Positions 41,541 to 41,751 of a stretch of 64,000 nt of DNA are shown in pieces. The notes beneath the pieces are model-generated. The model had not been told where the DNA came from. It saw nothing but the letters and a program-made list of their open reading frames with translations, and did no database searches. The translations under genes and the position numbers were made by a program. This DNA comes from Pavona decussata (lineage: Eukaryota): NCBI GenBank assembly GCA_977016875.1, contig CDRNST010000257.1, forward strand, positions 124,001 to 188,000, in the 5' to 3' direction. Position 1 is the stretch's first letter; every line of letters starts with the position of its first letter.

Positions 41541-41751
41541 GTTTGCGAAAGTAAATGACCAACTATAAAATGACTAATAACGACAAATGAGGGGGATTGG
41601 GTATTAGTAAACAGTTACGTCAAAAATACAATATGGAGTCCCAGCAACGATCACACACAAGCAGAAACACAAGTAAATTAAGCGAATCTAATCCAATTCC
41701 TTTTATTTCTTTGATAATGCATTTATTTTAATGTATTTTCAACCTAAATCC

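Follow-up and report, generated by a model that had tools for sequence, protein, structure and literature searches.

Putative histone downstream elements behind both genes of a coral Merlin transposon

The regulation of non-polyadenylated histone mRNAs in S phase is a well-established pathway, and the histone downstream element (HDE) is known in metazoans from examples such as the sea-urchin CAAGAAAGA and the vertebrate AAAGAGCUGU. To our knowledge, the pathway of stem-loop and U7 is considered exclusive to replication-dependent histone mRNAs. Among cnidarians, Hydractinia has been reported to have a stem-loop plus a purine-rich HDE (PMC5011920). The U7 snRNA itself has the Sm consensus RUUUNUCYNG and requires a hairpin closed by two G-C pairs, and a UCUUU box has been termed universal in it (PMC5054213). 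At the time of the surveys, few U7 snRNAs were known from groups other than deuterostomes and drosophilids, and a cnidarian U7 had escaped homology searches (PMC2655684, PMC5054213).

A connection between U7 and mobile DNA has been described in human, where U7 snRNA represses the expression of HERV1/LTR12. That case is like the one presented here in that U7 is linked to motifs of a mobile-element family; unlike what we describe for Merlin, the abstract of the LTR12 report describes no stem-loop-dependent 3' ends of the element's own genes (PMC11417402). For Merlin transposons, the word "histone" is absent from a survey of their distribution (PMC8101967), and in our full-text literature searches no transposon was described with a histone stem-loop or an HDE.

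Here we analyze a Merlin copy in a 64,000-nt window (the whole stretch of Pavona decussata DNA under analysis) in which a histone-type stem-loop and a shared downstream box follow both genes. The coral box is like the metazoan HDE in standing a fixed short distance 3' of a stem-loop and ACCA, in its AAAG purine core, in its presence in all five host histone classes, and in its complementarity to the 5' end of a candidate U7 snRNA. It is unlike the metazoan HDE in being bipartite, with a non-purine TGACCAA(Y) part at least as conserved as AAAG, and, in Merlin, in standing behind transposon genes rather than histone genes. As judged from the DNA sequence, the unusual feature is the carrier, and the putative HDE itself has the testable properties of one. 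New in this study are a candidate U7 gene cluster, tests of mismatch clustering and of the conservation footprint, a survey across lineages, and a promoter resemblance.

The Merlin copy and the 3' ends of its genes

Both hallmarks of Merlin membership are present at this locus, an IS1595-family DDE transposase (Pfam PF12762, DDE_Tnp_IS1595, E = 1e-23) and the terminal inverted repeats that enclose it (Table 1). In these two respects the coral element is like the Merlin / IS1016-IS1595 superfamily; it is unlike the superfamily in having two genes, one of them encoding a CCDC106-like partner, and in their histone-type 3' ends. The copy also has subterminal arrays of 11-nt repeats (families D1, D2 and D4). 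Matching flanks for a target-site duplication of 8-9 bp were found at neither plausible end of this old copy, which has a Helitron-like neighbor. The transposase gene and the second gene (ORF2) lie head to head within the element. The C-terminus of ORF2 is a borderline CCDC106 match (Pfam PF15794, 30.1 bits versus a cut-off of 30.2), and the gene has a frameshift in an A-run near 40896. The window's Merlin copy is dead, with both genes broken, and our statements on function therefore refer to the Merlin family. Intact relatives are available for a 293-aa transposase (L006:2702-3583) and for a 276-aa ORF2 product (L008:2215-3045), and full-length transposase homologs occur in Stylophora pistillata, Oculina patagonica, Acropora and Montipora. 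The sequence in contigs from public runs departs from that of the window at both the transposase stop and the ORF2 frameshift.

About 45 nt past the Merlin end, an ORF at 42046-42777 has an N-terminal motif (..PHLHALLW..) that is Helitron-like by eye, which places the Merlin copy beside or within Helitron-derived sequence. Elsewhere in the window, there is a tRNA gene on the minus strand (33742-33814; 44.3 bits) whose acceptor and T stems contain several non-standard pairs.

Table 1. Coordinates of the Merlin copy, its genes and 3' end signals, and the candidate U7 RNA (window positions unless a locus is named)
Feature	Position	Strand	Remarks
Merlin (IS1595/IS1016-like) DNA transposon, decayed copy	38190-42000 (approx.)		terminal inverted repeats I1, I16
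Transposase gene	39466-40347	-	interrupted by in-frame stop 39868-39870; from ORF list
Transposase stop codon	39468-39466	-	
Transposase stem-loop	39442-39427	-	perfect 6 bp, loop UUUA; 23 nt past transposase stop
Transposase ACCA	39426-39423	-	
Transposase spacer AATAAAAT	39422-39415	-	AATAAA inside
Predicted transposase HDE, block 1, AAAGT	39414-39410	-	followed by CTT gap, 39409-39407
Predicted transposase HDE, block 2, TGACCAAC	39406-39399	-	
Intergenic region of the divergent genes	40348-40646		presumed bidirectional promoter
Second Merlin gene (ORF2)	40647-41508	+	zinc knuckle, coiled coil, CCDC106-like C-terminus
ORF2 stop codon	41506-41508	+	
ORF2 stem-loop GGCTCT-TTTA-GGAGCC	41520-41535	+	6 bp including one U-G pair, loop UUUA; 11 nt past ORF2 stop
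ORF2 ACCA	41536-41539	+	cleavage predicted after ACCA
ORF2 spacer AGTTTGCG	41540-41547	+	unlike transposase spacer; ARTTTG.. type
Predicted ORF2 HDE, block 1, AAAGT	41548-41552	+	followed by AAA gap, 41553-41555
Predicted ORF2 HDE, block 2, TGACCAAC	41556-41563	+	
Predicted ORF2 HDE, AAAG(T) + 3 nt + TGACCAAC	41548-41563	+	predicted U7 snRNP binding site
Candidate U7 RNA, ~69 nt	L087:146-215	-	paralogs in L088, L089, L090

The minus-strand stem-loop of the transposase gene scores 35.5 bits against Rfam family RF00032 (Histone3), whose gathering score is 34, and the form of the ORF2 stem-loop is identical to the stem-loops of host H2A and H4. A sequence-only reading of this DNA had claimed that both stem-loops are followed by an identically spaced shared box. 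We confirm this box at 41540-41563 on the plus strand and at 39422-39399 on the minus strand, where the coordinates given in that reading were off by one base. The start of AAAG lies 9 nt past ACCA on either strand, and 9-11 nt past it in host histone genes. The same reading called the 8-nt spacers largely unrelated between the two genes, and indeed 2/8 bases are shared in the spacers and 0/3 in the 3-nt gaps.

The overlap with AATAAA that had been noticed in the transposase copy is likewise present, inside the spacer AATAAAAT, and AATAAA also occurs in the spacer of host H1. In several Merlin lineages (L005, L008, L105 and L109) AATAAA stands directly after the putative HDE or overlaps its end, and in the window's ORF2 copy the AATAAA at 41564-41569 is mutated to TATAAA. 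These AATAAA sequences near the Merlin HDEs could be back-up poly(A) signals.

The downstream box in host histone genes and across Merlin lineages

In the 602-Mb host genome, RF00032 matches recur about every 6 kb in tandem arrays, which lie on three contigs. One tandem unit (L067) encodes H1, H2A, H2B, H3 and H4, and in 5/5 of these genes the stem-loop is followed by A(C/A)CA, 8-10 variable nt, AAAG, 3 variable nt and a box at the corresponding offset. The five genes conform to AAAG-N3-T(G/A)(A/C)(C/T)CAA(Y), the second part being TGACCAA, TGATCAA or TACCCAA plus Y or G; individual host boxes read TGACCAA(G/T), TGATCAAT or TACCCAAC. The sole difference from Merlin is the gap between AAAG and TGACCAA, which is 4 nt in Merlin versus 3 nt in the five host genes. 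Because the same bipartite box stands behind five host genes, AAAGT-nnn-TGACCAAC can be read as the HDE of the host. Contig C90 encodes an SLBP RNA-binding domain, and no snRNA gene was found within the histone repeat unit. Histone clusters of other species, sought via the H4 protein, were returned only from the same or near-identical species (97-100% identical).

To place these boxes against chance expectation, we collected 47 distinct flanks 3' of histone-type stem-loops from all DNA retrieved, a set drawn from the five histone classes, from several lineages of Merlin and from a dozen further loci. The combined motif was defined as AAA(A/G) followed by an (A/G)NCAA box in the expected window. 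AAAG is found in 40/47 flanks, the box in 36/47 and both in order in 35/47, versus means of 4.9, 2.7 and 1.0 (maximum 4) in shuffled flanks; the 47 flanks include families of related copies and are thus not independent events.

Outside the histone cluster, a repeat family dispersed over at least 12 loci (L036-L047; for example, G000:C4:304092, C20:1744615 and C257:246188) has an identical histone-type stem-loop followed by CATATATAAAAGTCAATGACCAAC. These repeats also carry the full signal, and the contig of the window has one of them outside the window itself.

Comparison of Merlin lineages shows how far the box is kept. A second lineage in the same genome, with ~70% DNA identity, has AAAGTCTAAACCAAT after the transposase gene and AAAGTTAATAACCAAT after ORF2. 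In other assemblies, elements with transposases that are 52% (L105), 51% (L109) and 70% (L108) identical to the query have AAAGTCAATGA(C/T)CAA(Y) or a sequence close to it, in every case behind both genes if the two are present. For a Stylophora Merlin copy (transposase 77%), AAAG is present and the second block is degenerate (AACCGAC), and in relatives at 40-41% transposase identity (L104, L106/L107) the stem-loop is absent altogether. Mean pairwise identity among 11 Merlin 3' ends from at least five lineages is 0.35 in the 24 nt upstream of the stem-loop region, 0.91-1.00 in the stem-loop and ACCA, 0.82 at the base following the box and 0.32 in the next 24 nt downstream. Within the element, AAAG stands at 1.00 and the 7-nt box at 0.62, values that are partly by construction because AAAG and the box were anchored by a regular expression. 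The contrast of the box with both flanks is not a product of this anchoring, and the flank identities are at the level found between unrelated host histone flanks.

Internally deleted Merlin derivatives (L005, L010, L016-L019, L024 and L026-L028) have the transposase 3' region fused to the ORF2 3' region. In these derivatives, two tandem stem-loops 12 nt apart are followed by a single putative HDE.

Could the box be a passive hitch-hiker, captured with a histone 3' flank and kept by descent without a processing role, so that the stem-loop alone, or neither signal, matters? The similarity of the transposase flank to that of host H1 extends into the spacer (AATAAAAT versus AATAAATA) and includes the same GGCTCC stem, which fits capture. 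In addition, RNA cleavage draws no support from the public contig sets, whose RNA origin is a guess. Over 38100-42100, the runs that hold the element cover the genes and the terminal repeats, and contig sets that cover the whole transposon, terminal repeats included, are uninformative on RNA 3' ends; contig breaks at the stem-loops arise because the stem-loops are shared repeats, and are not RNA ends. However, the box persists at 51-52% transposase identity, where the 24-nt flanks are at background (0.32-0.35), and the differences between the two arms of the element avoid it. The box can also be lost, since the HDE is gone from the minus strand of a decayed copy (L008). The public contigs show copies that differ in the spacer (41547) and at the base that follows the box (41564) but not in the blocks. 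On balance, we regard an idle, inherited box as improbable.

A candidate coral U7 snRNA

An HDE is expected to have a partner in the 5' end of U7, and searches for a host U7 gene gave several candidates that were rejected. The Rfam U7 model (RF00066) consists mostly of deuterostome and fly sequences; over the whole genome its best match had E = 1.2, and six matches (L061-L066) were without an anti-HDE stretch or a 3' hairpin. The pattern TTGGTCA..CTTT..AATTT gave 98 matches versus 82 in the reversed control, with an Sm site and hairpin in 0/6 inspected. The pattern GGTCA..CTTT..RTTTNTCYNG gave 17 matches versus 63 in the control; 0/12 inspected were convincing, and one repeat family accounted for several of them. 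A metagenome scan with a 21-mer of the candidate described below had one match, without hairpin or anti-HDE, which we attribute to chance.

Because the box varies between TGACCAA, TAACCAA and TGATCAA, and U opposite G/A together with G opposite C/T would pair with all three, we searched for TTGGTYA. The pattern TTGGTYA..CTTT..TTTNTCY was not enriched overall (90 matches versus 131 in the reversed control). A group of four copies (L087-L090) stands out, all on contig G000:C62 within 60 kb (about 2994.7-3053.9 kb), and the candidate U7 sequence was found nowhere else in the genome.

Each C62 copy consists of a 5' UUGGUUAUGUGCUUUU, then AAAUUUCUCCAG, three bases and a hairpin. The putative Sm site AAAUUUCUCCAG (AUUUCUCCAG) fits RUUUNUCYNG, and the hairpin has 6+5 bp (11 bp) with a 2x2 internal loop and two G-C pairs at its base, in agreement with the published description of U7, in which the Sm site is directly followed by an 8-15-bp hairpin with two closing G-C pairs (PMC5054213). 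Some 10 nt past the hairpin, a GTTTAT.AAG..AAGA stretch resembles an snRNA 3' box. On the upstream side, the octamer GTCCCACA stands ~50 nt before the predicted start in 4/4 copies, and the identical octamer is located 50-52 nt upstream of three host U5 genes, so that the candidate and the U5 genes have an snRNA-type promoter box in common; host U1 and U2 genes have related upstream boxes of the CCACA/CCACC type. Conservation among the four copies reaches from about -130 to the 3' box, past which they diverge. Their 5' arms and Sm sites are identical, and the RNA itself differs at two positions, one in the loop and one where a C-to-U change still allows a wobble pair.

Among the other snRNA genes of the host, those of U2 and U1 alternate in ~2-kb tandem arrays (G000:C18:4-156 kb, C332, C501, C627 and C650), and those of U5 are clustered on C36 and C87.

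The C62 candidate is like U7 (RF00066) in its length, in a presumed histone-binding 5' stretch that ends in CUUUU, in its Sm site and 11-bp hairpin, in its snRNA-type upstream box and in its clustered gene copies. It is unlike U7 in scoring 14.3 bits versus the RF00066 gathering score of 34, in reading GCUUUU instead of the conserved UCUUU, and in an anti-HDE stretch that is long and in two parts. At the C62 loci, cmscan reports no snRNA family other than U7. The complementarity of the candidate to the box is partly circular, since the search that located it used the complement of the motif and pairing at 11 positions is by construction. The GTCCCACA box, the uniqueness in the genome, the conservation among copies and the family reported by cmscan are independent of the search pattern. 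Pairing outside the pattern comprises the flanking G-C (AAAGC), the fourth U, and the A before UUGG with CCAAT. We put the C62 cluster forward as candidate coral U7 snRNA genes.

Duplex energies were predicted between the first 27 nt of the candidate U7 and 3' flanks. The five host histone genes gave -16.3 to -22.6 kcal/mol, ORF2 of lineage B -16.5 kcal/mol and the lineage-B transposase gene -19.2 kcal/mol, compared with -8 to -10 kcal/mol for shuffled flanks. For the window's ORF2 element, the energy is -15.4 kcal/mol (shuffle mean -8.9), and for the transposase element of the window lineage it is a weak -10.4 kcal/mol, from two helices of 5 + 7 bp (z = -0.8). With the 3-nt gap of the host genes, one U7 base must bulge in the predicted duplex; with the 4-nt gap of Merlin, the predicted strands are in register with one or two mismatched positions. 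In H4, H2B and the lineage-B transposase gene the pairing extends into the 5' GCAGUA of the candidate U7, an extension that is not generally enriched.

The existence of an snRNA-type gene with a complementary 5' end also bears on the idea that the box works as DNA, with TGACCAAT/C as a CCAAT-type (NF-Y) promoter or terminator box, or as a transposase-binding site by the stem-loop. Several copies do read CCAAT, and CCAAT boxes occur in histone promoters and in the Merlin intergenic region. However, about half of the copies read CCAAC rather than CCAAT, the distance from box to stem-loop is fixed in 5/5 host genes regardless of the orientation of the neighboring gene, and the Merlin terminal repeats are built of different 11-nt units of the CCGACAG type. 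Together with the complementary snRNA-type gene, these observations make a DNA-level role very unlikely.

Two histone-like modules and their possible use by Merlin

In the repeat search, the two arms of the element appear as a 48-nt inverted repeat (I9) with 79% identity and 10 mismatches. Nine of these 10 mismatches lie in the 11 spacer and gap positions of the 48 (hypergeometric p = 3.1e-7). Across lineages, ORF2 spacers read AGTTTGCG, AATTTGAA, AGTTTGAA and ACTTTGCA (ARTTTG.. type), and transposase spacers are A-rich with an AATAAA-like run in most lineages; because the spacer type stays specific to each gene even in distant lineages, the modules were distinct before the lineages split. The earlier argument against a plain inverted duplication is upheld by this mismatch clustering and by the gene-specific spacers, and with the identical blocks present in host histone genes we give next to no credence to a simple inverted duplication within Merlin with drifted arms, or to chance, even though the arms register as an inverted repeat. 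The transposase module is similar to the host H1 end in both stem and spacer, and the ORF2 module to the host H2A and H4 ends (GGCTCT stem). The two modules would be compatible with an ancient capture of two different histone 3' ends, or with convergence.

A resemblance to histone genes is also seen between the two Merlin genes. The intergenic region shares nine 9-mers with the divergent H2B-H2A promoter of the host (L067:2017-2369), whereas dinucleotide shuffles share 1.5 on average and 1/1000 reaches 9. The common words include the octamer-like ATATGCAAAA, AACCAATCA and a run at 40553-40571. No enrichment of words from the Merlin intergenic region was found in the regions upstream of H4-H3 and H1.

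We consider it likely that 41548-41563 and its twin at 39414-39399 are HDEs and that, with the stem-loop and ACCA, they make up complete 3' processing signals of the replication-dependent histone type. This interpretation of the downstream box had first been made from the sequence alone, with the suggestion that host histone genes, other Merlin copies and the host U7 should bear it out. The motif is present at the same offset in 5/5 host genes (H1, H2A, H2B, H3 and H4), it is conserved among Merlin copies down to 51-52% transposase identity, and the 5' UUGGUUAUGUGCUUUU of the candidate U7 is complementary to both blocks, the last point being partly circular. Given host-type end signals on both genes and a box that matches the candidate U7, Merlin probably borrows the S-phase histone machinery.

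In intact Merlin members, SLBP would bind the stem-loop, and the 5' end of the host U7 would base-pair with both blocks, AAAG and TGACCAA(Y), which would be separated by a small internal loop or bulge. The endonuclease associated with the U7 snRNP would cut after ACCA. The resulting transposase and ORF2 mRNAs would be without poly(A), and their production and stability would follow the histone pathway in S phase. For this scheme we infer U7 expression, pairing, cleavage, absence of poly(A), coupling to S phase and a benefit to transposition. Since a cut-and-paste element would gain from acting during replication, the arrangement is plausible as an adaptation.

A more far-reaching proposal, for which we see even chances, is that stony-coral Merlin transposons mimic a divergent pair of histone genes over their full length, with an H2A/H2B-like bidirectional promoter, a stem-loop and a U7-binding HDE on each gene, and transposition timed to S phase, the U7 of the C62 cluster serving both histone genes and transposon. 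Under this proposal the mRNAs would be non-polyadenylated and histone-like, and the transposase and its partner would therefore be made only during DNA replication.

If these readings are true, the histone 3' end pathway can be hijacked by a transposon family, and there would be a concrete mechanism tying cut-and-paste transposition to S phase, a route described for no mobile element in the literature that we searched. The Merlin genes would also provide a natural non-histone substrate for studies of U7-dependent processing. Lastly, the bipartite coral HDE and the candidate U7 would make the co-evolution of U7 and HDE directly testable in a cnidarian.
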